From NCBI GenBank assembly GCA_002269645.1, contig NIVC01002205.1:124001-188000 (forward strand): a stretch of DNA of 64,000 bases, written 5' to 3'. Position numbers and translations under genes: made by a program. This DNA is from Macrostomum lignano (lineage: Eukaryota). Of the stretch, positions 1,886-61,647 are shown one piece after another (the first letter of the stretch is position 1; the number at the start of each line of letters is the position of its first letter). The notes beneath the pieces are model-generated. The model saw only the letters and a list, made by a program, of their open reading frames with translations. It was not told where the DNA came from and made no database searches.

Positions 1886-2230
1886 GTTACAAAGTACATG
1901 TAACTGTGTGTGTTAAAAACTAGCATTGCTTGATTGCTTTTTTACTATGTATATGTATTTTTTGGACAGGCTCTATTGAACAGCCTGCTGCTCAACTTAA
2001 GGATGCAAATCCAGCACCACTTGAGCAGCCTGACCTTGGCTCATCGTTAATCACTCATCGCTCATTGACGTAAAACGTAAAGGGGGTGCCATTTGTCCGG
2101 GAACAGCGAAACATTAGGGTGTTTGCCCTAATGTCAGGTAAGTCGAAATTGGGAATATATTATTAGTTTATTATTCAAAATTGTAAGATTTCCTGCCTAT
2201 TGTCAGCTACATGTAGCGCGTGCACACATT

Positions 2231-2844
2231 TTGTCCCTCAGGAAAATCTCAGCAAGACTATGCTGCCGTACTGAGGCGTCTCAGTACCGTCTCAGCACTG
2301 TTGTGCCTCAGGTGGCAATTCTTGACTTCGAAGGTGCCATGTGGCAGGCAATTAGTGAAGTATTCCCCACCACAAGGAAACAGGGCTGCCTATTTCATTA
2401 TAGCCAAGCTGTCTGTGGCGCCGGATCCAACTCGATGGTCTGACTCAGGCATTCAGGAGTCACGCACCAACGAAGGACTTCTGTCGACAGCTGATGGCGC
2501 TTCCGCTTCTGCCAGCTGAGCACATGGAGATCGGATTCGGTGACATTATTAGATCCACAAATGATGCCAGGCTGCTCCGGCTAGCAGAATATGTTGAGAC
2601 GACTTGGCTGACACATCCTGTGTGGACCAAGACGAATGTTAGCATTTTTCGGCAGAAAGTGCGCACAAATAATGAAGTAGAAGGCTGGCATCGTCGGCTG
2701 AAGAACAGAGCAGGCCGTGCAAAGCTTCCACTGTATATGCTACTCCAGCTGCTACACAAGGAGGCCAATGTTGCTGCTGTGCAGGCAGAACTGGTAGCTG
2801 AGCATCCGCAGATTCCTACGTGCCTGCAGTCGGCTTCAGCCTGA
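2231..2844 (+). pseudogene. MULE DDE transposase C-terminal remnant, frameshifted
   Basis: ILDFEGAMWQAISEVFPTTRKQGCLFHYSQAV (DFE..CxxH), then MALPLLP..YVETTW..RTNNEVEGWHRRL in another frame. These are typical MULE transposase motifs. Confidence 0.9.
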
Positions 2845-3705
2845 AGGATTGCATTAAGGATTGCAAGCTTTTACTTAAATTTTTTAATTCGTAACATTTT
2901 TATCTACTGAAATTGAAATATGAAATTTGCTTTTAACTTGGAACAAATTTTATTGCATCATCGCGCCTAGCCTTATAAAAATGTCAGCGATACAGTGTAG
3001 TTCATTTTTATCTTTGTGTTTTTACTTAATTGGCCAATAATTGATACTTACATGTATATCAACAAATGAAATATAACTTAAAACTCACGTTCCTTGCTAC
3101 TGCAGGCAGTTCTCTTCGCATAAATTAATTTTGACATTCGTCATCTCTACTGTTTGTTAGCTATATATTAGTCTCAGTAGTCATGCAGCAATCAGCATTA
3201 ATTGAGACAGTTAATATAAAAATTACGGGTGCATGCAAGAGATTTTTGCCTGAAGGTAGGAAAATCCTAAATTAATACACCCTTGCCTTTGGTCAAAGTC
3301 GTCATATTTAAATGTTTAAGTCTTCCAGATTTGTTCAAGTCGTCATCATCATATGACGATTTTGAATATGACGATTTCGGCTGCACCCATATGCACGCTT
3401 AAGTTCTACTTTTCATAGTCCAAGTTGTTTTTATGCTAGAAAATTTCAAAACAAAAGTATAATAAAGAATAATAGTTTTTAGCAAAAGCAGCTAGGCCCT
3501 ACTTTAAAGCTTAGTGAAACTCTTATAATTTTTAAAGAATATTTTTTCTAAAAAATGTAGTGTTCAAGCTACTTTACACTTAAAGTATAACTTTTCTATT
3601 CTATTCTATTTCTATACAACATTGGCATAAAATTGAAAAACTAGAAATTTCACTTTTAGCGCATGGGCCATGATCTACATTATGGCTTATTTTTACAGCT
3701 GGCGT

Positions 3706-4002
3706 CATACATGCGCAACGTCCAAAATTCGGTCGGCCGTGCGACTTAGTTTTAACAAAAATGCGACGTAGTTTTTGGCCAAAAATGCGACTTACATGTA
3801 AAAAAACCCTAAAGCAAAATTAACGCAACTTTGGGTAAACGGCGGGAGTAACTATGACTGTCTTATCAGGCAAAAATGCCTCGTCAGCTACTTAGTACTA
3901 CTGCGTGGGTATTTTTTGGGTGGGCATTTTTGCGACTTCCTTGGTTGGCTGCCAAATCAGTCGGCCGGATCGGCCGACTCGGCCGACTGTTGCGCATGTA
4001 TG
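3706..4002 (+). mobile_element. 297-bp MITE copy 1 carrying a 28S rRNA-derived segment
   Basis: 14-bp TIR catacatgcgcaac...gttgcgcatgtatg. 8-bp TSD gctggcgt at 3698-3705 and 4003-4010. Confidence 0.92.
3833..3896 (+). other. 28S rRNA-like fragment (helix 69-71 region, R2/I-PpoI target) inside the MITE; not a functional rRNA gene
   Basis: gggtaaacggcgggagtaactatgactgtcttatcaggcaaaaatgcctcgtcagctacttagt vs recalled eukaryotic LSU GGGTAAACGGCGGGAGTAACTATGACTCTCTTAAGGTAGCCAAATGCCTCGTCATCTAATTAGT. The first 27 nt are identical. Confidence 0.88.
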
Positions 4003-4438
4003 GCTGGCGTGCATGCTTGTGCACTGCTCCAAAAATGTGCGCATTTTCCCACCTCCAAGCAAGAATTCCATCCTGGCAATGTTGATAGCCAGTCAGTTTT
4101 TTCTTTAGCATTCTTAATCTCACAATGTATTTTATGTAAAAAGTTCTGTTTGACCTTTGTTTTTTAATGTTTTTTTAATATTGTAATTGGGAAATCCCTT
4201 TATAATTGGGAAATTATATCCCTTTATAATCCTTTTATAATTGGGAAATTTCTTAGCTACAATGCATGTACCAATACCATTATAAGAAAGAAACTCTTTT
4301 TTCTTGGTGAGTTAGTAAAAAACTAATAAAAAACTAAGAAAAATGAGTTTTTTCAACATTATCAGTTCTATTCATAAGAATACCAAATTCACAATAGAAG
4401 GTAGAAACAGAAGACTTCCTTTCTAAGACATTGACATT

Positions 4439-4736
4439 CATACATGCGCAACAGTCGGCCGAGTCGGCCGATCCGGCCGACCGATTTGGCGGCCAACCAA
4501 GGAAGTCGCAAAAATGCCCACCCGAAAAAATAATCAAGTAGTAGTACTAAGTAGCTGACGAGGCATATTGGCTTAATAAGACAGTCATAGTTACTCCTGC
4601 CGTTTACCCAAAGTTGCGTTAATTTTGCTTTAGGGTTTTTTTACATGTAAGTCGCATTTTTGGCCAAAAACTACGTCGCATTTTTGTTAAAACTAAGTCG
4701 CATGGCCGACCGAATTTCAGAGGTTGCGCATGTATG
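4439..4736 (-). mobile_element. MITE copy 2, inverted relative to copy 1
   Basis: Same TIRs. 8-bp TSD ttgacatt at 4431-4438 and 4737-4744. Near-identical to the reverse complement of copy 1. Confidence 0.92.
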
Positions 4737-5915
4737 TTGACATTGATACCACCAATGAAACTATTTCTACTATTATATTTAAGAAACCTAGCCTTACTAG
4801 GTTTATGCTTAGGTTTGATGCCCTGTGCCCTAGACAATGGTAAGTTTAATTGGTTTGCTACTTTCTTTACTGGGCCTTTTCCACAATGAAATTGAAATCC
4901 TTACCAACTTGCTTAGCTATAATTGTTACCCTAGGAGCTTTATATTGAAAATTGTTAACTCTTTTCTCAATGATAAACTGACTGACCTACTTAAATGACC
5001 TAATGACCTAACCTGATGACCTAATCAGAAACCTACTTAGATGAAAGTTTGTAAATCCATCTCTGATTGTCCCTTGATCATTTTATCTTTCTTTGGTGTT
5101 TGTTTTATTAAGTTCAAAAAAAGATTGAAAAGCTACTCCATAAAGACTTAATGCTTAAATCTATATTATTTTTTGTATTGAAAAGGTTGCTAAGTTTGTC
5201 TATAATCTGAAATCTAGTGTTTCTCATCCTTTTGTAGTAGGTGTCATATACAAATTTATTTGCTATGAGGACCAAAGTATCTCCTACATTGGAAAAACTA
5301 AACAACACCTATACACAAGGGTCAGAGAGCACTGGCTAAAAAACTCTGCTATTAATGAACACAATTAATGCTAACTTGCAATAGTTGTTGTGATGCTGAC
5401 CCATATAAGATAATGAAGGCTAATGATTTTTGCAATAGAGATCTTATGCTTTGCCTATTAAAATCCCTGTACATTAAAATGAGACAGCCCACATTAAATA
5501 GGGTATAACAGCATGGTGCAGGTTGATCTGCACAATGTATAGGTTATGATCACTATTTTATTTGAGTATGGTAATCATTAGACCCACCCAATGATGATAT
5601 TACTATATTTATGCAATGGGTAACTTAAATGACTGCTATAAAAATAACATAAGCATATTTGATTGCATTACCATTAAAAGTTGTGAGATAAGTGCTGTCA
5701 ATGGCCTAAAGTATGGTGACTTAACTGCCTTTTGTTTGGAAAAAAATATGTTTGTCTACAAACTTTTGGAACAATCCTCGTATATTCTTACAATAGCAAC
5801 AACAAAGTATTTTACTTGCCAATCACAAAGTGGCTAGAAAGGGTAGAGAATATATCTTTGAGCCATAGCCCTAAGAAAGTCACACCCCTAGCTTGGTCTA
5901 AAGTGCCAGCATTAT

Positions 5916-6213
5916 CATACATGTGCAACAGTTGGCCGAGTCGGCCAATCTGGCCAACCAATCTGGTGGCCAACCAAGGAAGTTGCAAAAATGCCCACCT
6001 AAAAAAATAACCAAGTAGTAGTACTAAGTAGCTGACCAGGCATTTTGGCCTAATAAGACAGTCATATAGTTACTCCTGCTGTTTACCCAAAGTTGCATTA
6101 ATTTTGCTTTAGGTTTTTTACATATAAGTCGCATTTTTGGCCAAAAACTACATTGCATTTTTGTTGAAACTAAGTCACATGGCCGACCAAATTTTGGAGG
6201 TTGCGCATGTATG
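5916..6213 (-). mobile_element. MITE copy 3, CpG-decayed
   Basis: catacatgtgcaac...gttgcgcatgtatg. Imperfect TSD cagcatta(t)/cagcattg. Collinear with copy 2. Confidence 0.88.
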
Positions 6214-6239
6214 CAGCATTGGTCAAAAGCCTGTCAAGG

Positions 6240-8960
6240 TATATTGCCATTTGCCCTTGGCCTTGCCTACATAGTCCCTGCATATTGAGCAACAGTATCT
6301 TATGCAGTGGCTCAGAGCAGCAAGCCTCCAACTGGAAGACATGGATAGCCAGTTGAAGTCGCTACTCGCACAGCAAGTAGAAGGCTACATCAGGTGTGTC
6401 CTTGTGTAGAGTGCAGCATTGGTCTCATTGCCTAAACCACTGCACACTTCAAATGTTGCACATAGCATGGACGCATGCGCAGTATCCAATTGCCTCTCCA
6501 AAGTGTCCATCAGGGTCCAGGTCTTGATGTTGTATGACAAGACAGTCTCAACAACTGCCTGAAACAGCCAAGCCTTGAGCCTATCATCTAGGGCCTCAGA
6601 ATAGAGCAAGGAGTGCACAGAACAAAATGTGACCCAGGCCAGTCCTTGTCATCTTACTAGGTTGTTGGCAACATCTGGCATGAGGCCACTGAGGTATAGG
6701 AACCACTGGCAACAGGTAAGCATGATTACCTCCCTGGCAGCATCTTGGTAGTTGATCTTAGCAGGCAGGTTGGAAAACACTGTGAAGTCTACCATATTCT
6801 GTGTGTTCAACATGAGGCCAACTTACAATGCTACTGCCATCAGGCCATCTAGCAGTCCACTGAGCACTTTTAGCAGACAATGATAGCAGCACAAAGTTGT
6901 CTGCTTAATAAAGAAAAAATAGAGAGCTGCTTCTCTGGGTGCTGCTGACTCATGCATATTCTTAGCAGGAAGCTATTATCCATGTTGGGCAGGCTAGTCC
7001 TTAGCACCCAATCCAGTGCCAGCACAAACAGGAAAGGTGCCAGAGTGTCACCCTGCAGCATGCTTGACAATGTGCTAAATTGGTCCAATAGTCAATCTGG
7101 CATCATCACCAAAGCAGTCATAGCCTGGTACATCGCCATGATGGCAGAAATCAGCAGTGTTAGGCAACTTCCATTCCTCTGTTCCTCCGTTACTACTGGA
7201 AGTTACTTTTTTTAGAAGCATTACTACTGGAAGTTACTTTTTTTAGAAGCGTTACTACTGGAAGTTACTTTTTTTAGATAACAGACTTGGTAACGGAAGT
7301 GACTTTTTGTAAGTCCATTACTTTTACAATTTTTACTTTAGTGTTATTTTCTTGTTTTACCTTTTGTGCATATTTCATATTGCATATTTGCCATTGTTTA
7401 TCAGTTTATTATACCATCTCTTTAGTCTTTTTATTTGTATGTTGTTCTATTTTTTCTCTTTTCTGTGACCTTTTTAGATTTTTATATTTTATTTGTATAT
7501 TTTTTTATCTGTTAACTGCATTCAATTTCTTTTTCATTTTTCGTTTTTCGTAGAATCCTTTTCTAGAAATAAAAATCCATATTAGAGTCTGACCTCTGTT
7601 GTCTGCAACTTTGCCGAGAATTCGTTGAGAATTGAAGAATTTGTTGAAAATTCATTGAGAATTTGCTGGGAATTTGAATTCGCCAACTTACACTGTTGTC
7701 TGTTACACATGGCATCATCATCATCGTCATTGATATCCCTAACCCCAAACCCCTAGGAACATTTGGTTCCCTTTTTTGAGCTACAGGAGTCAAAAAAGAC
7801 TCAAAGTGGATTTCAAATGGCAGCTCGTAACTTTCCTGGAAATTAATTTATTTAAACAACAAAAATGCAGGATGGCCACTGAAATAATTTTGTTACTGAT
7901 TAAGTGATTAATAATGAATAATGATCAGTGAATTAGTGATTATAAGGGGTTATAACGCATTTTGTTTAGCATATAGGGATATAGAGGATATAGTACAAGT
8001 AAAAGAATATACAAATAAAAAAGTAACGGAGTACCGGAAGTTACTTTTTGTTAAAGCGTTACAGTAACTTTTACCAGAAGTTACTTTTTGTGGTAATGGA
8101 AGTTACTTTTTTGAGTAACTTGCCCAACACTGGAAATCAGTTGCTTTAGTACATTGTATGCACAAAGCATGAGAGGCAGTGTGCTGCAAACCAACAAGTT
8201 GAAAGCCTTAAAGAAGTCAATAAAGATCACCACAAGACTTGACTGATATATATGCGCCTCCTTAATGATATGGCAAAGGGCTAGGATCTGCATCACTATA
8301 CCATGATGTAGGTGGAACCCATTCTGCTCAGGGTGCAGAAACTTGTCTAGCACAGGCTGCAACCAAGCTAGCAGCACATGGTTAAATAGCTTTTCAGTGC
8401 AGCACATGAGCAAGAACCCCCTGTGTTCCTTTTTCTATGTTGTACCTGGCTTCTTTGGGATTGCAACGATGTGTGCGGTTGTCTACTTGCGGGGGAGGGG
8501 GTGGCACTTCCAGAGAGGACATTGTTCATCCATTGTTCATTGGCCACTTCAGTGGCAACCCTTAAGACTTGCAGCACCTTGATAGGCACCTCATCGGGGG
8601 GTGCAACCCCCTTTCACCTGCCAAGCAAACTGCACTACATCATTGCTAGTTACTGGCTGAGTGCTGAAATCTTCCTGCAATGGCATCATTTCTGGCAGAG
8701 GCAATGGCATGTTGACAATATGAGCAAATAAGTTATGCAGCTTATTTCTATGTGCCTCTAGTATATTGCTGGTCAGATTCAGTACCATCTTCTTCTTGCA
8801 GCTAGTCAGGGCATTGATTGTAGGCCAGATAAGCCAATTCTGTTGGTTGAGCCCTGTAGAGGTAGCACTTCAAATGGCATCATCTACAGCAGCTTGCTGC
8901 TGTCTAGTATAGGCATCTGCCAGGGTTTTCTCAGCCTCGGCTGTTAGTAATTCCTATTAA
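6240..8960 (-). mobile_element. Degenerate non-LTR retrotransposon (RTE-like reverse transcriptase), split by a hAT-type insertion
   Basis: Fragments: LHPEQNGF..IFIDFFKAF (8081-8413), MLQGDTLAPFLFVLALDWVLR (6870-7088), KAWLFQAVVETVLSYNIKTWTL (6385-6618). The frame KQLIS|AIMAMYQ rejoins across the insertion. Confidence 0.88.
7155..8132. mobile_element. Non-autonomous hAT-type element (978 bp) nested in the LINE
   Basis: 8-bp TSD gaaatcag at 7147-7154 and 8133-8140. Termini cagtgttaggcaac / revcomp cagtgttgggcaag. Subterminal ggaagttactttt repeats at both ends. Confidence 0.88.
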
Positions 8961-8982: not shown

Positions 8983-10325
8983 TACAAAAACACCCAAAAA
9001 AGTTTTGGCAACTGGTCAACTATTAAAAAACAGTAACTGCAAAAAACAACTGAACATGTTATAATCCTTCAATGTAGTCTCCCCCTCTCTCAATGCACTT
9101 TTGGTGCCACTGAATCCATGCTTCAAATGCGCCATGGTACTCAGAAGCAGGTATGGCCTTCAGCTTTGAATTGATGCACTTAGCCAGGTCCTGGCATTGG
9201 TGAAAATTCCATCCTGCCAGCCGTTCAGTCAGCTTGGCGAATACCCAAAAGTTGCAAGGAGCCAAGTCAGGACTGTAGGGTGGGTGGTGGACTGGCAGAT
9301 GGTCTTGATATTGTTGGCTGCCAGAAAGTTGGTCATCAGGGCCGCTGTGTGACTGGACACATTGTCATAGTATAGGTGAACTTGCCTAGCTTGAAGCCAT
9401 AGGAGCAAAGTTGCGTGAAGTGACCCCATGACTTGTGGCAGAACCGTACTGGAGTAGAAGCTAGCATTCACATTCACATTCTGTCCATTAGGCACCATAA
9501 TGACAGCCACAGGCCCAGATGTGCTAATGAAGATGACAAACATCTCCTTCTAGGACCAAAAGCTGGACTGCAAGACAGTTGGCCTCACGTCTCCAGAGCC
9601 CACCTAGGCCTTGTTATGCATTTTCTAGGGCACTTGAAAATAAAAAAACCATTTCTCATCACCTGTAACAATGTTGGAAAGCCTCTGGCTGCCTCCTAGA
9701 CTAAAGTTGCGCAGGAATTCCTGGCTGCACTGCACCCTCTCCCTCTTCTGCTCTTCTGTTAGGAGGTGGGGCACCCAGCTGGTGGTGACCTTGCGGAGGC
9801 CCAGGTGGCTATGTAAGATGGTGTGTGCACTGCCATTGGAAATACTAACAGTCTCACTAATCACAGCGACGGTAATGTTTGGATCCTTGTCCATCAGAGC
9901 CCTGATAGCAGCAATGTTGGCTTCGGTCACAGCTGTGCTGGATCATCCAGACTGGGAGTTGTTGTTCAAGGAGGCCTGTCTGGCATTGATGGACTCTATC
10001 CACCTGGCAACCGTGCGACTAGCTTGGTCCCCGACTACCTGGACCAGGTCTGCATGGATTTTGACCATACTTTCTCCAAGTTGTGAGCGCATGAAAACAT
10101 AAAATTGCCACTGGTCTGGTTGCACTGGCTCCATTTTTGCCAGAGTAGAAAACACCACCTTGCATTGGCCACGCGCAAGTATAACACATTTGAGGGAAAA
10201 AAAGTCATACTCTATGGTTAAAACCAATATATGTTTGCAATTTTGTAGAAAAATTTCAACGCTTTGTGATATGTACTTTTGGAGATATTAGGCCAGTTGC
10301 CAAAACTTTTTGAATGCCCCTCGTA
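8983..10325 (-). mobile_element. Tc1/mariner element with pseudogenised transposase
   Basis: WVPHLLTEEQK, IVTGDEKWF, HPPYSPDLAPCNF-like motif and ..RGGDYIE fragments. TIR caaaaagttttggcaactgg at both ends, right end ...gaatgcccctcgta. ~1.34 kb. Confidence 0.92.
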
Positions 10326-13674: not shown

Positions 13675-16582
13675 ATGTTCGGCCGGCCCAACAGCCACAG
13701 CATGTCCGGCCAGTCAAGCCCCTCCAACTCGAACTCGGCCTGGCCAGATGGCCGACCAGACACTATTTTCTTCGAGAGTGCGCCTGGCCCAGCTCCTGTT
13801 TCTATGGCAACATATGAGCAAACGGGCGATCTCACAGAAGGCTCCGGTCACCAGAGGCCTCTGATGGCGCTGTGCATCATTCCGGAGCTGCAGTCGCGCC
13901 GGCGTGAAGACTATGTCCGGCGAGCCAAACGATTCGCCAAGGAGCAAAGTGTCAAGTTCATCATGCACCAGATGCAGGAGAAGCACCACCGCGCGGTGGG
14001 TAGAGTGTTTGCTTCATTACTGCTTTCAATTCATGAGTGAAATTTGATTAAAAAGCCGTTTAAAATTAGGATTTGTTAGTTTGTACTATTCAAGTGCTGT
14101 GGAAAATGCATTCTGTGACATCGTCCCACAGCCGGTGGGAAGGCAATTGTGGCAGACACACTAGCGCGGGTATACATGCGCACATTCACAGGTGTCTGAA
14201 TTATTCAAAGTCAGGCCATATACACTTTTACAATTTAGGGTGTCCGGGTTCGGTCCTCGTGTTGTACGAGAAAACCCCATGCTGTGACTGAGTATTGCTA
14301 CCCCAGATAGATATGACCACACCTGAATTCTATCCCGCTTTGTCACAATCGTCATTGATCAATAATTATTGAATGAGCAACACTTCCCCTTGCAGCAAGT
14401 TCAGCAAGTGAAGCGAGCTCAGGCTCTGTTGCTGCTCAGCAGAATTTACGTGGGCAGCATTGCCGCTGACGTCACAGAGGAGATGCTGACTGCCGCCTTC
14501 CAAACCTACGGCACAGTAAAGGCCTGCAACATGGGTTTCGACAACGCCACCCGCAAACACAAAGGCTATGCATTTGTTGAGTTCGAGCTGGCCGAGGCAG
14601 CCACACTGGCCATTGACGGCATGAATGGATATACCATTGGTGAGGAGTCGGAGTGCACTGTGTCATGAGTTTATTTGGTGAGGAGTCAGAGTGCACTGTG
14701 TCATGAGTTTATTTGGTGAGGAGTCAGAGTGCACTGTGTCATGAGTTTATTTGGTGAGGAGTCGGAGTGCACTGTGTCATGAGTTTATTTGGTGAGGAGT
14801 CAGAGTGCACTGTGTCATGAGTTTATTTGGTGAGGAGTCGGAGTGCACTGTGTCATGAGTTTATTTGGTGAGGAGTCGGAGTGCACTGTGTCATGAGTTT
14901 ATTTGGTGAGGAGTCAGAGTGCACTGTGTCATGAGTTTATTTGGTGAGGAGTCGGAGTGCACTGTGTCATGAGTTTATTTGGTGAGGAGTCAGAGTGCAC
15001 TGTGTCATGAGTGCATACACTGTTGATGTTAAATTAAATCCAATTTTACCTGTTCCTTCGGTACTCATCCCGCAGGAGGTCGCAACCTAAAAGTGAGTCG
15101 GCCATCAAACATTTCGAATCCAAACCCGGTGATTGACGAGCTAGTGCGCGAGGGGTCGCTGTACAGCCGCGTTTACGTGGCCAACGTGCACCCGCAACTC
15201 ACCGAGTTCGAGCTGCGCTCCGTGTTTGAGGCTTTCGGCTCGCTGGTGAGCTGCAAGCTGGAGCCCGACCCCACCGTGCCCGGCGTTCACTGCGGCTTCG
15301 GCTTCATAGAGTATTCCACCCCGGAGTCTGCGATCGAGGCCATCAGTGCGATGCATGGATTTGACCTTGGCGGGCAGCTGCTCAAGGTTGGCAGGTCAGT
15401 CTGAGACTTGCCGGTTCGATGCTTCGATATTCCGCATTTCATTCTTATCCATTATATCTACCTGTATGTGCATAAGCATTTCAATTGGAAGAGTCGTGGG
15501 GAAATGGCTAACTACCCAGCTCTGTTCTACTCTAGAATAGGGGAAACTGTAGTAGAATATATGGCATTGTTGGCAATTGTGAAATACCGCTTAGTTCACA
15601 AGTAAGCTGCAAAATTTGCTCAAAAATTCCTAAAATTCGAGCGTAAAGCCAGCCTTCCAAACCTTCCTTGAGTTCCTTCCTTTCAGCCAGCCTAAAATCG
15701 ATGCAAAAGCTTGTTTATTCCATATCCAATTTAAAGTCGGTGTCATTTAGCGCAATTTATGTTTTGGTGCTGAAAGAAAACTTGTGCTGCAGCTTAGTCG
15801 ACTATTTAATTAAACCACCTACTCGATCCACCAGGGCCATCACTCCGCCCGTTGTGCCGGTTTCCGCCCCTCCATCCGCCCTGCCCGCGGCGGCTGCCGT
15901 TGCAGCTGCCAACATCACTGCCCAGCTCATGGCACAGCGGGCTGTGGGTCCGGCAGAGCTCAGTTCATCTGCACCTTCGGCCCCCCAGCAACAGCAACAA
16001 CAGCAGCAGCAACAGCAGCAGCAACAGCAGCAGACCCAGAATCAGCAGCCGCAGGTATCGCAGCAGCAATCGGAACAGCCGCAGGTGTCGCAGGCAGCTG
16101 CAGCTCTGGCGCCTCCTCCGCCTGTCGCAGCTGCAATGGCGGCTGCGGCAGCGGCGGGGATGACTGAGAGGCAGCAGCAGCAGCTAATGGAGGATGATGC
16201 GATGCTGGGCCAACAACCGGAGAGCGTTGAGCACGAGAACGACTTCATCAGGGGCCAGGAGGCTAGGCGGCTGGTGATGCGGAAGCTGATGATGCGGGCC
16301 GCACCACCCAGGGTGCTCCTGCTGCGCAACATGGTCACGCCGCAGGATTTGGACGAAGACCTGGAGTCCGAAGTGTCCGCCGAGTGCGCCAAGTTTGGCA
16401 GCGTCCAGCGGGTGGTCATCCTTGAGCAGGCGGACTCCGTGCGGGTGTTCGTTGAGTTCGAGGACTCGGCTGGGGCTGAGGCTGCCTGCCGTGCCATGGC
16501 TGGTCGCTTCTTCGGCGGCAGGGAGGTTCGGGCAGATCTGTACGAGCAGGAGCTGTGGGAAGCCGGTGACCTCACCCAGTGA
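13675..16582 (+). CDS. PUF60: Poly(U)-binding splicing factor PUF60/half pint; exons 13675-13995, 14396-14639, 15076-15394, 15835-16582 (543 aa)
   Basis: RRM1 RIYVGSI..KHKGYAFVEF, linker GGRNLKVSRPSN, RRM2 RVYVANVHP..GFGFIEY, AITPP, C-terminal UHM VLLLRNMV..GRFFGGREV. All three introns are GT-AG and phase-consistent. Start codon inferred. Confidence 0.93.
14640..15011 (+). repeat. 38-bp minisatellite (~10 copies) starting exactly at the PUF60 intron 2 donor
   Basis: Unit gtgaggagtc(g/a)gagtgcactgtgtcatgagtttatttg, starts at 14640, 14678 ... 14982. Confidence 0.97.
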
Positions 16583-25660: not shown

Positions 25661-28600
25661 ATGCCCATTCAGCCAACAGTTCCTGAAATTGTGGAAAGGC
25701 ATTGATGTGCACAGCCTGCCAACTGTTGGCAGCGGTTTTGCTAGTCATTTGGTAAGTAGAATAAATATTTTAATTGGTAGCTCTATAAGGGCATTCCAAT
25801 TAGTCCTATCTGTAATAAATATCGTTCCTTTTAATCTATTTCAGATTGATTGTGAAGCTGAAACAGAACTGTGTGCCAAACATAAGATAAAGTATTACCC
25901 AAGGTGAGTGTTAATAATTTGTGAAGCCCTTTGCTGACCCAAGCTGTTTGACCCCTGATCCTGCAGCACCAGAACCTGTGCCCAGTTACCTGATCCTGCA
26001 GCATCAGATTCCACCAGCCCAATTACCTGATCCCGCAGCATCAGATTCCACCAGCCCAGTTACCTGATCTCTGATCCCGCAGAATCAGATTCCACCAGCC
26101 CAGTTACCTGATCCCGCAGCATCAAATTCCACCAGCTCAGTTACCTGATCCCGCAGCATCAAATTCCACCAGCTCAGTTACCTGATCTCTGATCCGCAGC
26201 ATCAGATTCCACCAGCCCAGTTACCTGATCCCGCAGCATCAGATTCCACCAGCCCAGTTACCTGATCTCTGATCCGCAGCATCAGATTCCACCAGCCCAG
26301 TTACCTGATCCCGCAGCATCAGATTCCACCAGCCCAGTTACCTGATCCCGCAGCATCAGATTCCACTAGCCCAGTTACCTGATCCCGCAGCATCAGATTC
26401 CACCAGCCCAATTACCTGATCCCGCAGCATCAGATTCTCTAATCTGGAATCTGGATTCCACTAGCCCAGTTACCTGATCCCGCAGCATCAGATTCCACCA
26501 GCCCAATTACCTGATCCCGCAGCATCAGATTCCACCAGCCCAGTTACCTGATCCCGCAGCATCAGATTCCACCAGCCCAATTACCTGATCCCGCAGCATC
26601 AGATTCCACCAGCCCAGTTACCTGATCCCGCAGCATCAGATTCCACCAGCCCAGTTACCTGATCCCGCAGCATCAGATTCCACCAGCCCAGTTACCTGAT
26701 CCCGCAGCATCAGATTCCACCAGCCCAGTTACCTGATCCCGCAGCATCAGATTCCACCAGCCCAGTTACCTGATCCCGCAGCATCAGATTCCACCAGCCC
26801 AATTACCTGATCCCGCAGCATCAGATTCCACTAGCCCAGTTACCTGATCCCGCAGCATCAGATTCCACCAGCCCAGTTACCTGATCCCGCAGCATCAGAT
26901 TCCACTAGCCCAGTTACCTGATCCCCCAGCACCAGATTCCACCAGCCCAGTTACCTGATCCCCCAGCACCAGATTCCACCAGCCCAGTTACCTGATCTCT
27001 GATCCCGCAGCATCAGATTCACCAGCCCAGTTACCTGATCTCTGATCCCCCAGCATCAGATTCCACCAGCCCAGTTACCTGATCTCTGATCCCGCAGCAT
27101 CAGATTCACCAGCCCAGTTACCTGATCTCTGATCCCGCAGCATCAGATTCACCAGCCCAGTTACCTGATCTCTGATCCCCCAGCATCAGATTCCACCAGC
27201 CCAGTTACCTGATCTCTGATCCCGCAGCATCAGATTCACCAGCCCAGTTACCTGATCCCCCAGCATCAGATTCACCAGCCCAGTTACCTGATCCCCCAGC
27301 ATCAGATTCCACCAGCCCAGTTACCTGATCTCTGATCCCGCAGCATCAGATTCTACCAGCCCAGTTACCTGATCTCTGATCCCGCAGCATCAGATTCACC
27401 AGCCCAGTTACCTGATCCCCCAGCATCAGATTCCACCAGCCCAGTTACCTGATCTCTGATCCCGCAGCATCAGATTCCACCAGCCCAGTTACCTGATCTC
27501 TGATCCCGCAGCATCAGATTCCACCAGCCCAGTTACCTGATCTCTGATCCCGCAGCATCAGATTCCACCAGCCCAGTTACCTGATCTCTGATCCCGCAGC
27601 ATCAGATTTCACCAGCATGGCTCGCATCAGCCGCAGGTGTTTCGTGGGCGCCGAACTGCCGGTACGCTGCTGAGCTTCCTGGGCAAGGCGATGCTCGGCT
27701 CCACGGTACCCGCTGTCGAGGCAGAAGCCCTTGGCGATACTGCCGCATCCCCACCACTAATGCTGGATGGCGTGATGGAGCTGACGGACGCGAACTTCGA
27801 CTCGTTCACTGCTGGCGGGCCGGTATTTGTGAAATTCTTCACAGACTGGTGCCCGCATTGCAAACTGCTGAAGCCGCTGTTCCCTCAGCTGGCTCCGCTG
27901 GCCAAGCGGCTGGGCGTGGCGCTGGGCCAGGTGAACTGCGAAAGCCAGCCGGACACTTGCAGCAAGCAGGCAGTGCCGCATTATCCCTACATGGCGCTGT
28001 TCGGCCACGGCCGTCGTCTGGGTGTTCACGAGGCCGACAACACCATCGAAAATTGGCAGCAGTTCCTGCAGCTGAAACTACAGGAGCTGGTTGCCGACAG
28101 AGCTGCGGCTGTCTCCGAGGGAGTCCTTGAGAACTGGTATTCGGTGAGGATTTTGCCATCAGGATTATTGTATCCTAATTATATCTGACCTATTTTATTT
28201 TTATTATTTTTATGCAATAGTCTGTAGGCTTCTTTACTTGTTTGGTTCCTTTTTAACTGTCTGCTTCACTGTGTGCACACTGCCAAGGTCAAGAGGAGAT
28301 TACTGAGAGTTTGACTTACTACTGAATGGCTAGTCAAGTTTTCGCTTTTGAGACACTTTACCAACAGTTGCTGGCTTTGCTGTTCAAGTTTTGGTCAAAG
28401 GCTGATATTTCTAGGAAAGTGTGTGGAATGCATATGCTTCTACTGTGCTTATTGGTGGTGGAATGCTAGTCATAATTGAGTCTGGCTGCTATTTTTTCGT
28501 GAAAGCTGGCTCGAAAGCCCCATCTATTCGGCAGGAAGCAGGATTAACCCCTGCTGTTGGATCTTGGAGTTAGATTTGTCTGCAAAGTTTTTGCTTTTCA

Positions 28601-35794: not shown

Positions 35795-37660
35795 GATTTA
35801 AGAGCTTGGCCCACAGGTGACAGCTCAGCGCCTGGATGCAGAGACGTTGCAGGGACAGAGAGCTTGGCCCACAGTCTCAGCTTGACCTGTGACAGCTCAG
35901 CGCCTGGGTGCAGAGACGTTGCAGGGACAGAGAGCTTGGCCCACAGTCTCAGCCTGACCTGTGGCAGCTCAGCGCATTGGTGCAGAGACGTTGCAGGGAC
36001 AGAGAGCTTGGCCCACAGTCTCAGCCTGACCTGTGGCAGCTCAGCGCCTGGGTGCAGAGACGTTGCAGGGACAGAGAGCTTGGCCCACAGTCTCAGCCTG
36101 ACCTGTGGCAGCTCAGCGCCTGGGTGCAGAGACGTTGCAGGGACAGAGAGCTTGGCCCACAGTCTCAGCCTGACCTGTGACAGCTCAGCGCCTGGGTGCA
36201 GAGACGTTGCAGGGACAGAGAGCTTGGCCCACAGTCTCAGCCTGACCTGTGGCAGCTCAGCGCCTGGGTGCAGAGACGTTGCAGGGACAGAGAGCTTGGC
36301 CCACAGTCTCAGCCTGACCTGTGGCAGCTCAGCGCCTGGATGCAGAGACGTTGCAGGGACAGAGAGCTTGGCCCACAGTCTCAGCCTGACCTGTGACAGC
36401 TCAGCGCCTGGATGCAGAGACGTTGCAGGGACAGAGAGCTTGGCCCACAGTCTCAGCCTGACCTGTGACAGCTCAGCGCATTGGTGCAGAGACGTTGCAG
36501 GGACAGAGAGCTTGGCCCACAGTCTCAGCCTGACCTGTGGCAGCTCAGCGCCTGGGTGCAGAGACGTTGCAGGGACAGAGAGCTTGGCCACAGTCTCAGC
36601 CTGACCTGTGGCAGCTCAGCGCCTGGGTGCAGAGACGTTGCAGGGACAGAGAGCTTGGCCCACAGTCTCAGCCTGACCTGTGGCAGCTCAGCGCATTGGT
36701 GCAGAGACGTTGCAGGGACAGAGAGCTTGGCCCACAGTCTCAGCCTGACCTGTGGCAGCTCAGCGCCTGGGTGCAGAGACGTTGCAGGGACAGAGAGCTT
36801 GGCCCACAGTCTCAGCCTGACCTGTGGCAGCTCAGCGCATTGGTGCAGAGACGTTGCAGGGACAGAGAGCTTGGCCCACAGTCTCAGCCTGACCTGTGGC
36901 AGCTCAGCGCCTGGGTGCAGAGACGTTGCAGGGACAGAGAGCTTGGCCCACAGTCTCAGCCTGACCTGTGGCAGCTCAGCGCCTGGGTGCAGAGACGTTG
37001 CAGGGACAGAGAGCTTGGCCCACAGTCTCAGCCTGACCTGTGGCAGCTCAGCGCCTGGGTGCAGAGACGTTGCAGGGACAGAGAGCTTGGCCCACAGTCT
37101 CAGCCTGACCTGTGGCAGCTCAGCGCATTGGTGCAGAGACGTTGCAGGGACAGAGAGCTTGGCCCACAGTCTCAGCCTGACCTGTGGCAGCTCAGCGCCT
37201 GGGTGCAGAGACGTTGCAGGGACAGAGAGCTTGGCCCACAGTCTCAGCCTGACCTGTGACAGCTCAGCGCATTGGTGCAGAGACGTTGCAGGGACAGAGA
37301 GCTTGGCCCACAGTCTCAGCCTGACCTGTGGCAGCTCAGCGCCTGGGTGCAGAGACGTTGCAGGGACAGAGAGCTTGGCCCACAGTCTCAGCCTGACCTG
37401 TGGCAGCTCAGCGCCTGGATGCAGAGACGTTGCAGGGACAGAGAGCTTGGCCCACAGTCTCAGCCTGACCTGTGGCAGCTCAGCGCATTGGTGCAGAGAC
37501 GTTGCAGGGACAGAGAGCTTGGCCCACAGTCTCAGCCTGACCTGTGGCAGCTCAGCGCCTGGGTGCAGAGACGTTGCAGGGACAGAGAGCTTGGCCCACA
37601 GTCTCAGCCTGACCTGTGGCAGCTCAGCGCCTGGGTGCAGAGACGTTGCAGGGACAGAGC
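35795..37660. repeat. 72-bp minisatellite (~26 copies)
   Basis: Unit gtggcagctcagcgcctgggtgcagagacgttgcagggacagagagcttggcccacagtctcagcctgacct. One 1-nt deletion near 36589. Confidence 0.97.
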
Positions 37661-39902: not shown

Positions 39903-40265
39903 CCTCTGAGTCCGCTTCCATCCACACTGGACTCAGCATCCTCTGAGTCCGCTCCCATCCACACTGGACTCAGCATCCTCTGAGTCCGCTTCCATCCACA
40001 CTGGACTCAGCATCCTCTGAGTCCAATCCCATGCACCCTGGTCTCAGCATCCTCTGAGTCCGCTCCCATCCACACTGGACTCAGCATCCTCTGAGTCCGC
40101 TTCCATCCACACTGGACTCAGCATCCTCTGAGTCCAATCCCATGCACCCTGGTCTCAGCATCCTCTGAGTCCGCTTCCATCCACACTGGACTCAGCATCC
40201 TCTGAGTCCAATCCCATGCACCCTGGACTCAGCATCCTCTGAGTCCAATCCCATGCACCCTGGTC
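39903..40265. repeat. 37-bp minisatellite with an internal 8-bp hairpin, abutting the nuclear receptor ORF
   Basis: ctgagtcc-N15-ggactcag-catcct, ~10 copies. Confidence 0.95.
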
Positions 40266-43200
40266 AAAGGCTGCCGGTGAAAGCCGCCGGAGGGCAAGTT
40301 TCGCAGGAAAGCTGTCTGGCAATTCCATCCCAGTTGCAGATGCACCGGTTCACGACGGCGGTGTCTTCTCTGCACCAGGCCGCGGCGGCTACGGTATTTG
40401 CTTGGCCAGGAATGTCCCGTAGAGGCGGAAGCGCAGGAATCGGAGACGGCAGTGTCGCCACGCCGCAGAATTCGATCTACAGTGGGCCGCACCAGCACAG
40501 CCAGCTGCCCGGCCACCACCAGCACCAGCACCAGCATCATCAGCATCATCGGCCGAAGCCGCCTCTGCCACCCCCGCTGCCGCTGTTGCCTCTGTCGGGC
40601 AAGCCGGAGCCTCTGGCACTGCCGTCTCACACAATTGCCGCCGTTCAGCGTCGCCGCAGGAAGCTGGCCAACAACGGGGGAACCCCGCTGTGCGCCATCT
40701 GCCAGTCACACGCCTCAGGGTACAACTTTGACGTGCTCAGCTGCGAGAGCTGCAAAGCTTTTTTCCGACGCAGTGCCTGGCGACTGCAGTTCGATTCGAG
40801 GGTTGGCACAGCACTTTTAACCCCACTTGTTGTACAACCAGTTCCCTAAGCAACTTCGCACTGATACAACCAGTTCCCTAAGCAACTTTGCACTGATACA
40901 ACCAGTTCCCTAAGCAACTTCGCACTGATACAACCAGTTCCCTAAGCAACTTCGCACTGATACAACCAGTTCCCTAAGCAACTTCGCACTGATACAACAA
41001 GTTCCCTAAGCAACTTTGCACTGATACAACCAGTTCCCTAAGCAACTTTGCACTGATACAACCAGTTCCCTAAGCAACTTTGCACTGATACAACCAGTTC
41101 CCTAAGCAACTTCGCACTGATACAACCAGTTCCCTAAGCAACTTTGCACTGATACAACCAGTTCCCTAAGCAACTTTGCACTGATACAACCAGTTCCCTA
41201 AGCAACTTCGCACTGATACAACCAGTTCCCTAAGCAATTTTGCACTGATACAACCAGTTCCCTAAGCAATTTTGCACTGATACAACCAGTTCCCTAAGCA
41301 ACTTTGCACTGATACAACCAGTTCCCTAAGCAACTTCGCACTGATACAACCAGTTCCTCAAGCACCTTCGAACTGACACAACCAGTTCCTCAAGCACCTT
41401 CGCAATGATACAATAATGCAGTTCCTCAAGTACCTTTGCACCGACAACCAGTTCCTCAAGCACCTTCGAACTGACACAACCAGTTCCTCAAGCACCTTCG
41501 CACTGATACAATAATGCAGTTCCTCAAGTACCTTTGCACCGACAACCAGTTCCTCAAGCACCTTCGAACTGACACAACCAGTTCCTCAAGCACCTTCGCA
41601 CTGATACAATAATGCAGTTCCTCAAGTACCTTTGCACCGACAACCAGTTCCTCAAGCACCTTCGAACTGACACAACCAGTTCCTCAAGCACCTTCGCACT
41701 GATACAATAATGCAGTTCCTCAAGTACCTTTGCACTGACAACCAGTTCCTCAAGCACCTTCGCACCGATACAACCCGTTCCTCAGGCACCTTCGCACTGA
41801 TACAACCCGTTCCTCAAGCACCTTCGCACTGATACAACCATGCAGTTCCTCAAGCACCTTTGAACTAACCACTTCCTCAAGCACCTACGCACCGATACAA
41901 CCAGCTCCTCAAGTACCTTTGCACCGACAACCAGTTCCTCAAGCACCTTCCGCACTAATACAACCATGCAGTTCCTCAAGCACCTTCGCACTGATACAAC
42001 CATGCAGTTCCTCAAGCACCTTCGCACTGATACAACCATGCAGTTCCTCAAGCACCTTCCGCACTAATACAACCATGCAGTTCCTCAAGCACCTTCGCAC
42101 TGATACAACCATGCAGTTCCTCAAGCACCTTCGCACTGATACAACCATGCAGTTCCTCAAGCACCTTCGCACTGATACAACCATGCAGTTCCTCAAGCAC
42201 CTTCGCACTGATACAACCATGCAGTTCCTCAAGCACCTTCCGCACTGATACAACCAGCTCCTCAAGTACCTTCGCACTGATACAACCAGCTCCTCAAGTA
42301 CCTTCGCACTGGCCCTGCCAGTTTTAACTGAAAACGCCACTAATTTTGCACAGCTCCATTAAATGCAATGAAACCTCGCCTCATCCGTTCTCCTTGGATC
42401 AGAACAAGCCGTGCAATCCGCACATCTCCGCCCCACCCAACCACGCCGTGGCAGCTGCGACTCTGCAGGATGGCGGGCAACTGTCCAACCACCGGCCGGC
42501 TGCGCAAGCGCTGCCCCGCCTGTCGGCTGAAGCGCTGCCTTGCCGCAGGGATGAAGCCGGAGCTCATCACGCGTACGTAGCTGGCTGATGAGCATCTCAG
42601 TCGCTCATGGCCACCTCCAGTCTGATATACGAGCAGAAAGTTCCGACAGTATAGAGTCCCTGCCCCATTGCCTCATGTGCGCTCTGGGTAATTAGGCAAG
42701 TAGCGTCTTAAAAACATGGAATAATTAACTCATCAAACTAATGAAAATGGGAAGTGAAAGTGGCAGTAATTTTTCGAGGAACACAGTCGGGCAGTTAATA
42801 CTTTTGTGCAATAATTGCTTTTACCAACTTTATCCGAACACATAAAACTAGTCAAAAATACTTTGCTTTAACGCCACTCAGGCTCCCGATTTTTGCCTAT
42901 CGCTGGCGTTCAAGTGGAGAAACTTCACTCTAAGCTGGGGAATTCTGGAGAAAGACAGAGCTGCTCTTTTCAGTCTGGAATCGACTAGAGGCGCTAATAG
43001 CCCCTCATTTCACCCTGAGTCCCGATGCCCGATGCCGTATCCCCGCCCGCAGCGCTCAGCAAGCTGGTGACCCGGGCCAATTACCGAGGGCGCAAGGAGA
43101 ACCGGCCCGGATTTCTTTACTGGCAGCCCAAGCCACCGCTGATGCAGCCGCTGCCGCCGCCGCAGCTGCCTCCGCCGCCGCCGCCACCACCGCCTCCATC

Positions 43201-48100: not shown

Positions 48101-50190
48101 TTTTAGGATTTTAAACTCGAAAGTTGATTTTACTTGAAATAGTTAACAAGGTTTTGAATTAATGGAGAATTAAGAAAGAATTTCGCCCTTGTATTTTTTT
48201 CGATTAAAAAGAACCAAACTCGCAAAATTGAAAGTTTGCAACTACGGACTCTTGTGTTCAAGAAGTAAAATAAATAAAAACGTAAAAATGCTCCAAAAGG
48301 ATGTTAAATTCATTGATAAATGCAAAAGACGAAAAAAGCCTATAAATGATATCTCGAGTGCTAGAGTAAATAATGAAATTTAATTATCATTATGAATCTA
48401 ACCACCATTTCGCATTCAAGGGTTTAATTAAACTTTTTTAATTCAACTACAAAAATATGATAATATCATATCATTGACATAGGTCACATAGTTAACACAT
48501 AATTTAACATGTGACGAAAAAGATTAGATAGAACAGCTCTAACATTAATGTATATTTTCGTTATGTGTAGGCCTGCGTAGATGTAACATGACCGGGCAGC
48601 CTTACATGTTAATTGGATAATCAACAGAACTTGGAATATTTTTTCTTGACTTTATCTAATCTGTGGAGTGTGGTCGTGGACTCGAGGATAGATCATTTAC
48701 ATTTTCTGTCCTAAAGGCGCGCCCTGTCAGGATTCTAAGCACCCTGACACCATATTTTGTTGTTGTTTTTGTTCTGTTGTTGTTTTGTTGTTATCTAATG
48801 CAAAGTAGTATAGAAAGATTGGCAATCTTCAATCTTCAAGTCAACAAAGCTGCTACTTTCTCAGCTAGGAAAGGGCTCAGTACACTGGAGAGCTCGAAAA
48901 TAATCATCTCAGAGCAAGATAGTTCAGAAATCGTCGAAAAAATAATTTAACGAACGAAACTTGAAGATTGCCAAAAGATTATATGCTTTAATCTTTAAAA
49001 GATAGGGGCCTAGTATTACTTTCAATTTTCTAATATCTTTTAAGATAGAAAATATAGTATTACTAGGACACAATGCAAAAAGACGAGTTTTGTTGCTAGA
49101 GTTTTAAAATTTATTTGATTTTTAGAAATAGCCTAATATTAGTATATAGAAATAACTGTTAGTCTTAGATTAGAACTATTAGTCTTAGAAAATATATATT
49201 GAAATCTTTATTCTTTATAGACCCAACTTATTTAAAAGCTTTTTTGTATAATTGTTGCATAATTCTTTTTTAATTTCTTTTTAATGTCAATGCCTATTTT
49301 AGAACCCTTTTTTATTTAAATAAAAGCTTTGATACTAAGCATCAAAGGATAAAGGGGATGCTATTATCTTCTTAGGCTAGATAACTAGCTTTTATTTAAG
49401 GCTTTTTGCTTTAATTATATATCATTTCCTTAAGCAATAACAAAATTACTATATAATGCCAAAAACTATATATAGTTCATTCAAAGAGTTTTTTCCTTTC
49501 TTTAATCTTTGATTTCTCTCAAACATTAAATGTATCCCATTTTATAGATTCATTATTCATTGATTTAAAAGGGAAAATAATAACAAATAAAAACAAGAGG
49601 CATTAGAAATAACAAGAAAATAAAATAATAAAATATGCATAATTAGAAATTATTTATTCTAATTAGAAATATGCATATAAATATGCAAATAAATAAAATA
49701 TGCATAATTAAATTATAAAGACTTGTATTTGCTAAAAAGATTGCAAGTTTAATTGTAAAATATATTTTTTAAAATAGCTTATTGTATTTTATAGCCAATA
49801 AGTTATATCACACAATATATAATGCTTTTTAAAGCCATTGGTGAGTCATCCTTGGCATAAACTATTCATAAATATCAAATAGACTTAGAATCTAGACATT
49901 AGCCATTGTTTTTTGCTGCCTTTGTCATAGGAATACCATTTTCATTATTCAAACTGTTTAATCACTTTGTAGTAGACCATATACTATTGCTAAATCTCTA
50001 TATACTTAAGCTATTCATAACTAGCAACAAGGTCTATCAGTTGCTCTTAAGACAAATATTTGCACTTATCAAAAGCAGCCCTATCTTCTTGTCCTCTATT
50101 GTCCATATTGTACTATCTAGACTAAACTTACACTTAGATTTCAATATTTTCAACAATTCACTGCATGGTGTATTTTGTTGGGGCCAGACA

Positions 50191-55105: not shown

Positions 55106-55239
55106 CTAACTGGCTCGGAGATTGAGCCAGATTTTTAGTAGTTATTTTCCATTTGACCGCTTGATTGACACCTGCCACCTAGAAATATGCTGCTTGCATG
55201 AAGCGCAACTGTATGCTGGTCTCTGAGCCACTTGTTGAG

Positions 55240-56331
55240 CGAGTAGCTGAGGTGTCCCATGGTGAGGTGCCTGCAATCAAATTAGCTGAGTGAGTAGCTG
55301 AGGTGTCCCATGGTGAGGTACCTGCAATCAAATTGGCTGAGTGAGTAGCTGAGGTGTCCCATGGTGAGGTGCCTGCAATCAAATTAGCTGAGTGAGTAGC
55401 TGAGGTGTCCCATGGTGAGGTACCTGCAATCAAATTGGCTGAGTGAGTAGCTGAGGTGTGTCCAATGATGAGGTGCCTGCAATCAAATTGGCTGAGTGAG
55501 TAGCTGAGGTGTCCCATGTTGAGGTGCCTGCAATCAAATTGGCTGAGTGAGTAGCTGAGGTGTGTCCCATGATGAGGTGCCTGCAATCAAATTGGCTGAG
55601 TGAGTAGCTGAGGTGTGTCCCATGATGAGGTGCCTGCAATCAAATTGGCTGAGTGAGTAGCTGAGGTGTGTCCCATGATGAGGTGCCTGCAATCAAATTG
55701 GCTGAGTGAGTAGCTGAGGTGTGTCCCATGATGAGGTGCCTGCAATCAAATTGGCTGAGTGAGTAGCTGAGGTGTGTCCCATGATGAGGTGCCTGCAATC
55801 AAATTGGCTGAGTGAGTAGCTGAGGTGTGTCCCATGATGAGGTGCCTGCAATCAAATTGGCTGAGTGAGTAGCTGAGGTGTGTCCCATGATGAGGTGCCT
55901 GCAATCAAATTGGCTGAGTGAGTAGCTGAGGTGTGTCCCATGATGAGGTGCCTGCAATCAAATTGGCTGAGTGAGTAGCTGAGGTGTGTCCCATGATGAG
56001 GTGCCTGCAATCAAATTGGCTGAGTGAGTAGCTGAGGTGTGTCCCATGATGAGGTGCCTGCAATCAAATTGGCTGAGTGAGTAGCTGAGGTGTGTCCCAT
56101 GATGAGGTGCCTGCAATCAAATTGGCTGAGTGAGTAGCTGAGGTGTGTCCCATGATGAGGTGCCTGCAATCAAATTGGCTGAGTGAGTAGCTGAGGTGTG
56201 TCCCATGATGAGGTGCCTGCAATCAAATTGGCTGAGTGAGTAGCTGAGGTGTGTCCCATGATGAGGTGCCTGCAATCAAATTGGCTGAGTGAGTAGCTGA
56301 GGTGTGTCCATGATGAGGTGCCTGCAATCAA
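55240..56331. repeat. 51/53-bp minisatellite (~21 copies)
   Basis: gagtgagtagctgaggtgtgtcccatgatgaggtgcctgcaatcaaattggct. Confidence 0.96.
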
Positions 56332-59411: not shown

Positions 59412-59449
59412 GTTTGTTGAAGTGCCCGATGGGGTGCTGAGCCAAAACT

Positions 59450-61646: not shown

Positions 61647-61647
61647 A

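Follow-up and report, generated by a model that had tools for sequence, protein, structure and literature searches.

A miniature inverted-repeat transposon family in Macrostomum lignano with a fragment of the 28S rRNA gene as its probable passive cargo

Why would a short DNA transposon carry a piece of the 28S ribosomal RNA (rRNA) gene, and in particular the piece in which R2 retrotransposons, I-PpoI and Pokey have their target sites? The question is raised by three copies of a MITE (miniature inverted-repeat transposable element) within a 64,000-nt stretch of the Macrostomum lignano genome (GenBank assembly GCA_002269645.1, contig NIVC01002205.1, positions 124,001 to 188,000, forward strand). 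We call this whole stretch the window, and all coordinates below count from its first nucleotide. The element is likely to be a Pack-type MITE whose ribosomal DNA (rDNA) cargo is passive, having been captured once and then spread by ordinary transposition.

The three elements are a mobile, non-autonomous and non-coding family of transposons with terminal inverted repeats (TIRs). The copies are 297–298 bp long and all lie within 2.5 kb (Table 1), and their ends form a 14-bp inverted repeat, CATACATGCGCAAC / GTTGCGCATGTATG, which is perfect except for one mismatch in copy 3. With up to two mismatches allowed, the TIR motif occurs six times in the window, where 0.49 occurrences are expected and none of 100 shuffles reaches six, which bears out the three elements of ~297 bp with 14-bp TIRs described in a first-pass annotation of this DNA. 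That annotation had also credited two of the copies with perfect and different 8-bp target site duplications (TSDs); this is what we find for copies 1 and 2 (GCTGGCGT and TTGACATT), and a third, degenerate TSD surrounds copy 3. Because the TSDs differ and the flanks are unrelated (no alignment was obtained between the flanks of the three copies), the copies are independent insertions, as had been proposed, and a segmental duplication as their common origin is ruled out. Pairwise identity is 94.9% between copies 1 and 2, 90.2% between copies 1 and 3 and 91.6% between copies 2 and 3, and transitions predominate among the differences. BLASTN and nhmmer searches with the three copies as queries found no fourth copy in the window. 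No open reading frame (ORF) is confined to the MITE, the only ones being short and running out into the flanks. A single strand of the element folds as a hairpin over its whole length, with a DNA folding energy of −60.2 kcal/mol compared with −39.0 ± 3.8 kcal/mol for shuffles (z = −5.6). Of the subterminal motifs, which are concentrated in the elements, TGCGACTT falls inside the MITE copies in seven of its eight occurrences in the window, and AAATGCGAC in all five. The DNA around the copies is AT-rich and rich in transposons, and lies upstream of the exon at 14369, the first clear one of the host.

Inside each copy is a segment of about 64 nt which derives from the 28S region containing the R2, I-PpoI and Pokey sites. 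When a published 84-nt 28S target was compared with the window by BLASTN, copies 1 and 2 aligned at 86% over 66 nt (E = 5e-15) and copy 3 at 81% over 68 nt (E = 7e-9), and Smith–Waterman local scores against the same target were 85, 82 and 65 for copies 1 to 3, compared with 16.5 ± 2.2 for shuffles. These E-values and scores rule out a chance resemblance to 28S. The 27-mer GGGTAAACGGCGGGAGTAACTATGACT of copy 1 is found exactly inside the published 28S target oligonucleotides used in R2 biochemistry. It is also found in a metagenomic contig (L001) that scores 935 bits against the Rfam model of eukaryotic large-subunit (LSU) rRNA, at model positions 2225–3401; this contig is a genuine protist LSU rRNA and was kept as a reference. 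In R2 coordinates, copy 1 is identical to 28S over 27 nt upstream (−36 to −10) and over 13 nt downstream (about +5 to +17). The 27-nt LSU identity reported in the first-pass annotation is exact (27/27) in copy 1 only, with 26/27 in copy 2 and 25/27 plus a 2-nt insertion in copy 3, and exact identity picks up again at AAATGCCTCGTCA (a block of 13 nt in copy 1) and not, as had been stated, at CAAATGCC. The least conserved part of the segment is the stretch between the two identical blocks, which is the actual R2/I-PpoI/Pokey site.

The 28S homology stops at ~64 nt, with no significant extension into the arms (P = 0.06–0.97, in an exploratory comparison with the flanking 28S). Rfam, searched with a permissive E-value over the MITE region and with gathering thresholds over the whole window, gave no LSU match (a piece of 64 nt is too short for the 3.4-kb LSU model); its matches to MicC, mir-7360, PreQ1 and STnc180 are due to chance. 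Neither Rfam nor BLASTN found other LSU-like pieces or rDNA in the 64-kb window. The segment is not an rRNA gene or an rDNA pseudogene (orphon), given that homology covers only ~64 nt and there is no extended LSU colinearity. The junction k-mers ACTGTCTTAT and CAACTTTGGG are specific to the MITE and cannot be yielded by rRNA. At the left junction (window positions 3826–3852) the MITE reads CAACTTTGGGTAAACGG, where the protist LSU contig (L001, positions 12–39) reads CAAGTTTGGGTAAACGG and insect and vertebrate R2 targets read CAAGCGCGGGTAAACGG; the MITE and L001 both carry ...TTTGGGTAAACGG, the alternative 28S form being ...CGCGGGTAAACGG. From this comparison, the captured piece may start ~7 nt further upstream, in a 28S with TTT at that place.

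How much of the target is left in the segment? For R2Bm, cleavage needs two motifs at a fixed spacing, RUM, A(−31)WWWGCNNNA(−22), and RASIN, T(−6)TNANNT(+1): cleavage is abolished if T(+1) is changed and drops severely if T(−6), T(−5) or A(−3) is changed, and only +1 is tolerated in the spacing between the motifs (Wilkinson et al., PMC10499050). RUM suffices to recruit R2Bm to targets that are mutated upstream (PMC10499050). In the MITE, all three copies have a RUM that fits the consensus: that of copy 1, AACGGCGGGA, is the wild type, and those of copies 2 (AACGGCAGGA) and 3 (AACAGCAGGA) are altered only where the consensus has N or W. In the RASIN register, where 28S has TTAAGGT, copies 1, 2 and 3 have TTATCAG, TTATTAA and TTATTAG, and none of them retains A(−3) or T(+1), two of the four required positions. 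The spacing between RUM and RASIN is wild type in copies 1 and 2, and +2 in copy 3 from the 2-nt insertion. The recognition site of I-PpoI is the 15-bp sequence CTCTCTTAAGGTAGC, from which the copy consensus CTGTCTTATTAGGCC differs at 7 of 15 positions (counted manually from the alignments). The TTAA used by Pokey in 28S is 4 nt from the R2 site (PMC3315735, PMC4912750, PMC10946416), and the original TTAA is gone in the MITE copies. Insertions of R2 into MITE copies, which the first-pass annotation had advised looking for, are absent from the three copies, all of which have a segment uninterrupted by R2 or any other insertion. Judged by these motifs, the cleavage core of the R2, I-PpoI and Pokey sites is destroyed in the MITE segment. 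The earlier view that the transposon had captured an rDNA target is right as to the 28S region of origin, while the core of the target is scrambled in all copies.

These losses bear on the suggestion, made in the same annotation, that the dispersed copies are a functional decoy or landing pad, which would bind R2-type proteins or take insertions and so spare the rDNA or spread R2. As a landing pad the segment fails on the counts just given, with RASIN wrong at two required positions in every copy, 7 of 15 I-PpoI positions changed, TTAA lost, no insertion in any of the three copies and a spacing in copy 3 that exceeds the tolerated +1. A decoy would draw on RUM, which no copy has lost and which in copies 1 and 2 stands at its wild-type distance from RASIN; however, only RUM survives and nothing supports protein binding, the segment is not preferentially conserved, and off-target motifs resembling RUM–RASIN are already common in genomes (PMC10499050). 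Either function is, in our judgement, scarcely credible.

Adjoining copy 3, and outside it, a degraded non-LTR (long terminal repeat) retrotransposon occupies 6226–8434 on the minus strand. Its reverse transcriptase (RT) motifs are spread over three shifted frames, with a weak match to Pfam RVT_1 (E = 1.5e-4), and a 31-bp minisatellite splits it at 7190–7278. By eye, we take this element to be RTE-like and not R2-like.

Did each copy acquire its 28S piece separately? The three copies share ten differences from invariant 28S and have the same junctions between segment and arms, and therefore a single capture took place, and the piece had been altered, before the copies diverged. Seven of these ten differences fall within 8 nt, AGGTAGCC, that span the R2 nick (clustering P = 4.5e-5 compared with random placement). 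Across this stretch the net length is unchanged and the differences are not reducible to one simple indel. They look like one complex lesion and not like gradual decay, and such a lesion could have originated as an error of capture, in an already damaged rDNA unit, as a scar of misrepair or as a selected resistant variant.

The last two origins would give the cargo a history with a nuclease: an intact R2 or homing-endonuclease site would have been captured, cut and misrepaired, or only lineages without the site would have escaped R2. This idea adds to a passive capture and does not replace it. It is suggested by the clustering of the shared differences across the R2 nick, by the removal of A(−3) and T(+1), which are two of the four positions that R2Bm needs, by the accompanying loss of Pokey's TTAA, which in 28S lies 4 nt away from the R2 site, and by a RUM (−31 to −22) that fits the experimental consensus in all three copies. 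Yet the coincidence of cluster and nick is weak when taken alone, because the chance that an 8-nt cluster straddles a given position in 64 nt is ~0.12. The lesion also lacks any net change in length and is not the one simple indel typical of end joining, no R2 or homing endonuclease is known for the host, and an error-prone capture or a damaged rDNA pseudogene as donor explains the lesion equally well. We regard a nuclease scar or resistant allele as unlikely, though deserving of consideration. The broader proposition that the cargo records an encounter with an rDNA-specific nuclease, and that copies which keep RUM and resist cleavage could bind and titrate R2 genome-wide, is one to which we give little weight.

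After capture, has selection kept the 28S piece? Conservation of the segment does not exceed that of the arms, and there is no sign of extra constraint on it, with between-copy identities of 89–92% in the segment and 88–95% in the arms (Fisher p = 0.35–1.0, from three copies and with little power). Decay is of the CpG type, as in neutral methylated DNA: of 24 CpG sites, 22 are retained in copy 1 and 20 in copy 2, and copy 3 has lost 16 to TG/CA. This loss to TG/CA points to methylation of this DNA by the host and to a greater age or longer exposure of copy 3. As we read the LSU structure, the middle pair of the stem of helix 69 (H69) is broken by the change of C to G at −9, and rRNA-like folding is therefore not maintained.

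Conservation at background level also counts against a role in producing small RNAs against rRNA, in which inverted copies would give double-stranded RNA with about 27 nt that match 28S perfectly. The arrangement of copies 1 and 2 is what invites this idea, as they are inverted, 436 bp apart and 95% complementary, and a transcript through both is predicted to fold to a hairpin of ~297 bp (minimum free energy −636 kcal/mol), which, if it were transcribed, could serve Dicer as a substrate. Pack-type elements have been proposed to act as sources of antisense or small RNA (PMC8277862). But an inverted layout is the chance expectation for clustered MITEs, and silencing of an rRNA that is essential and hugely abundant is implausible. 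We consider such a role very improbable.

To which superfamily does the carrier belong? Copies 1 and 2 have the 8-bp TSD of hAT elements; P elements and some of the Mutator, Merlin, Novosib and Zisupton groups can have TSDs of this length too. The usual hAT pattern is a TSD of the form nTnnnnAn and a TIR that starts with YARNG (CAG/TAG). Here, positions 2 and 7 of GCTGGCGT are C and G, position 7 of TTGACATT is T, and the TIR starts with CATAC, unlike the hAT consensus. Because both the TSDs and the TIR start misfit hAT, we leave the superfamily open (8-bp TSD: hAT, P or similar); the hAT or P affiliation suggested in the first pass agrees with the length of the TSD and disagrees, for hAT, with the usual consensus. 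Non-autonomous elements of hAT-like or P-like kind, to which a transposase supplied in trans binds, are usually built in this way, with short TIRs and repeated subterminal motifs. Besides the subterminal array of Table 1, copy 1 has a further TCGGCCG at 3733, near its opposite end, and TGCGAC(TT) motifs at 3740, 3762, 3786 and 3931, all four in one orientation, which are candidate transposase-binding sites as well. The autonomous element with the same TIR for which the first-pass annotation proposed a search was not found, there being no longer element with this TIR in the 64-kb window.

Transposase-like debris nearby, of Tc1/mariner-like and MULE-like kind, was considered as a partner and rejected as unrelated to the MITE. 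The first consists of three consecutive ORFs in different frames at 9229–10227 on the minus strand, resembling a Tc1/mariner transposase, with weak matches to Pfam HTH_Tnp_Tc3_2 (E = 0.025) and DDE_3 (E = 0.18). The second is an ORF at 2494–2844 on the plus strand which contains ...RTNNEVEGWHRRLKNR..., has no Pfam support and does not have the TIR of the MITE; by eye, this motif resembles animal MULE-type transposases.

How, then, could a MITE have come to carry rDNA? By the likeliest route, a double-strand break or an excision gap in a non-autonomous MITE would undergo repair, and repair synthesis would jump to another template that is abundant in the cell, either rDNA or perhaps its transcript, and copy ~64 nt from it, by template switching or by capture of filler DNA, as has been put forward for Pack-MULE and Pack-TIR elements. 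The chimera would keep both ends and could be mobilised by a transposase acting in trans, which would likely bind via the subterminal motifs. Ordinary transposition would spread the MITE with its 28S piece, possibly to linked sites. The rDNA piece has no cleavable R2, I-PpoI or Pokey site left, and it decays as fast as the remainder of the element does.

The position of the 28S piece, which is central between arms that both carry TCGGCCG and TGCGAC motifs, might also be explained by a macrotransposon, in which MITE copies or an rDNA-targeting ancestor flanked a 28S stretch, the outer ends mobilised both together and an internal deletion followed. Macrotransposition and end-bypass are recognised routes of capture for TIR elements (PMC8277862). 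However, no inner TIR remnants lie beside the segment, the three TSDs have no rDNA-like target preference, and there is no rDNA nearby in the 64-kb window, and we judge this route improbable.

Several points also weigh against a single passive capture of rDNA by the MITE. The evidence comes from three copies in one 2.5-kb stretch, and with this number of copies the selection test on the segment has little power. Neither a family member without the segment nor an autonomous partner was found, and the breakpoints, any microhomology there and the mechanism of capture are therefore putative. Neutral decay of a passive cargo does not predict that 7 of 10 differences should cluster on the R2 nick (P = 4.5e-5). 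The middle of the captured piece moreover coincides roughly with the insertion hot spot that is best known in rDNA, which may be a matter of ascertainment, because a reader working from sequence only recognises just the ultra-conserved stretches.

Transposons that carry host DNA are known, and the MITE can be compared with several of them. Like Pack-TIR and Pack-MULE elements, for example Pack-hAT-N8_XT of Xenopus (PMC8277862), it has TIR arms which flank a short host-derived fragment; in both cases several copies with different TSDs indicate transposition after capture, and both are without coding capacity. For animal Pack-TIRs, an origin by gap filling or template switching has been described, and so have microhomology at the breakpoints and, as rarities, hAT captures in several copies whose TSDs differ (PMC8277862). 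Multicopy captured host DNA is rare in animal TIR elements, with 4 of 370 in a survey of 100 animal genomes (PMC8277862). Unlike in the Pack-TIRs, the cargo here comes from the multicopy 28S rRNA gene and not from a protein-coding gene or untranslated region, its 64 nt contrast with a median capture of 224 bp (PMC8277862), and it is old, being 14–19% diverged from its parent.

Pokey and mPok of Daphnia (piggyBac; PMC3315735, PMC4912750, PMC10946416) are likewise a DNA transposon family that includes MITEs and has rDNA-derived internal sequence. They are linked to rDNA, and the TTAA target of Pokey lies inside the 28S stretch captured here. However, Pokey makes TTAA duplications, inserts in 28S and has an rDNA part made of intergenic spacer (IGS) repeats, whereas the duplications made by the MITE are 8 bp long and lie outside rDNA, and its rDNA part is 28S coding sequence. 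Mobile non-autonomous elements with a module from an rRNA gene also include short interspersed elements (SINEs), namely SINE28 (28S), SINE3 and others derived from 5S, and the terminal-repeat retrotransposons in miniature (TRIMs) Cassandra and Ajax. Those are retroelements, whose 5S modules act as a pol III promoter, and the carrier here is of the TIR/TSD cut-and-paste type. To our knowledge, the H69–H71 piece has no promoter activity. Identity as an rRNA-derived SINE is excluded by the TIRs, the fixed 8-bp TSD and the absence from the MITE copies of an A-rich tail or one like that of a long interspersed element (LINE). Compared with the native R2 target, the segment has its RASIN replaced and a C→G at −9 that breaks H69, and it lies outside an rRNA gene. 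It shares with that target (PMC10499050) the upstream 27 nt, including RUM AACGGCGGGA in copy 1, and 13 nt downstream.

The rDNA modules of transposable elements were reviewed in 2024, including the IGS repeats of Pokey/mPok, the 5S-derived SINEs, SINE28, Cassandra and Ajax, and the table of that review has no MITE with a 28S coding fragment (PMC10946416). In our literature search, we found no description of the TIR sequence or of an element that combines a MITE with a 28S fragment. A sequence-pattern search of viral, metagenome and prokaryotic contigs, with patterns for the right end of the element, for its left junction with 28S and for the core specific to it, found no further copy of the MITE. 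Prokaryotic contigs gave no match at all, and the one match among metagenome contigs was the LSU rRNA of L001. The one viral match, a 24-nt identity to copy 1, GGAGTAACTATGACTGTCTTATCA, in a 266-aa ORF of a phage-like IMG/VR contig (L002, positions 4925–4948) is without flanking similarity and was dismissed as chance.

Table 1. Coordinates of the MITE copies, their parts and the larger minisatellites in the window
Feature	Coordinates	Strand	Remarks
MITE copy 1	3706–4002	+	297 bp; 28S-like segment in rRNA sense on + strand; 94.9% identity to copy 2
MITE copy 2	4439–4736	-	298 bp; inverted relative to copy 1, spacer 436 bp
MITE copy 3	5916–6213	-	298 bp; oldest or most decayed copy; 16/24 CpG sites changed to TG/CA
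14-bp TIR of copy 1, CATACATGCGCAAC	3706–3719	+	partner at 3989–4002
TIRs of copy 2	4439–4452 / 4723–4736
TIRs of copy 3	5916–5929 / 6200–6213
TSD of copy 1, GCTGGCGT	3698–3705 (left), 4003–4010 (right)	.	perfect 8-mer
TSD of copy 2, TTGACATT	4431–4438 and 4737–4744		perfect 8-mer
TSD of copy 3, CAGCATT	5907–5913 and 6214–6220		degenerate; left one offset by 2 nt
Subterminal array, three TCGGCCG at 9-bp spacing	3958–3987	.	candidate transposase-binding sites
28S segment of copy 1	3833–3896	+	R2 coordinates about −36 to +28; RUM 3838–3847 intact; RASIN register 3863–3869
28S segment of copy 2	4546–4609	-	upstream block 26/27
28S segment of copy 3	6023–6088	-	upstream block 25/27, with TA insertion between RUM and RASIN
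Minisatellite, 37 bp x 29	26454–27586
Minisatellite, 72 bp x 25.6	35817–37659
Minisatellite, 14 bp x 161	52231–54377
Minisatellite, 53 bp x 21	55236–56331
Minisatellite, 49 bp x 45	59448–61647

Apart from the MITE copies and the transposon remains around them, the window contains host exons and a large amount of tandemly repeated DNA. Two exons with RRM domains at 14369–16582 belong to a gene resembling SPF45/RBM17, whose sole database relative (E cut-off 1e-10) is 49% identical and has a G-patch domain. Exons elsewhere encode a thioredoxin domain, a nuclear-receptor C4 zinc finger (zf-C4) and an ENPP-type phosphodiesterase (27637–28188, 40253–40849 and 49906–50799). Together these exons mark the host as a metazoan. 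From 14600 to 61900, long and very regular minisatellites occur at an extraordinary density between GC-rich exons, and several of them produce long spurious ORFs on both strands. At 62491–63980 on the minus strand, two adjacent long ORFs of 323 and 161 aa have no homologues in the protein collection and a hint of DUF6128 that is below threshold; they may be an orphan or lineage-specific single-exon gene.

What does the finding mean for transposons and for this genome? It is most likely a curiosity and not a new mechanism, an accidental single capture in which the target site was destroyed. It adds one case to the transposons that have picked up rDNA fragments, and also one to the multicopy TIR captures of animals. 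For annotation, LSU-rRNA matches dispersed over this genome could represent cargo of the MITE instead of rDNA orphons, and primers or probes placed on the conserved region of the R2 site (for example a primer of the 28SV type) could cross-hybridise with MITE copies.

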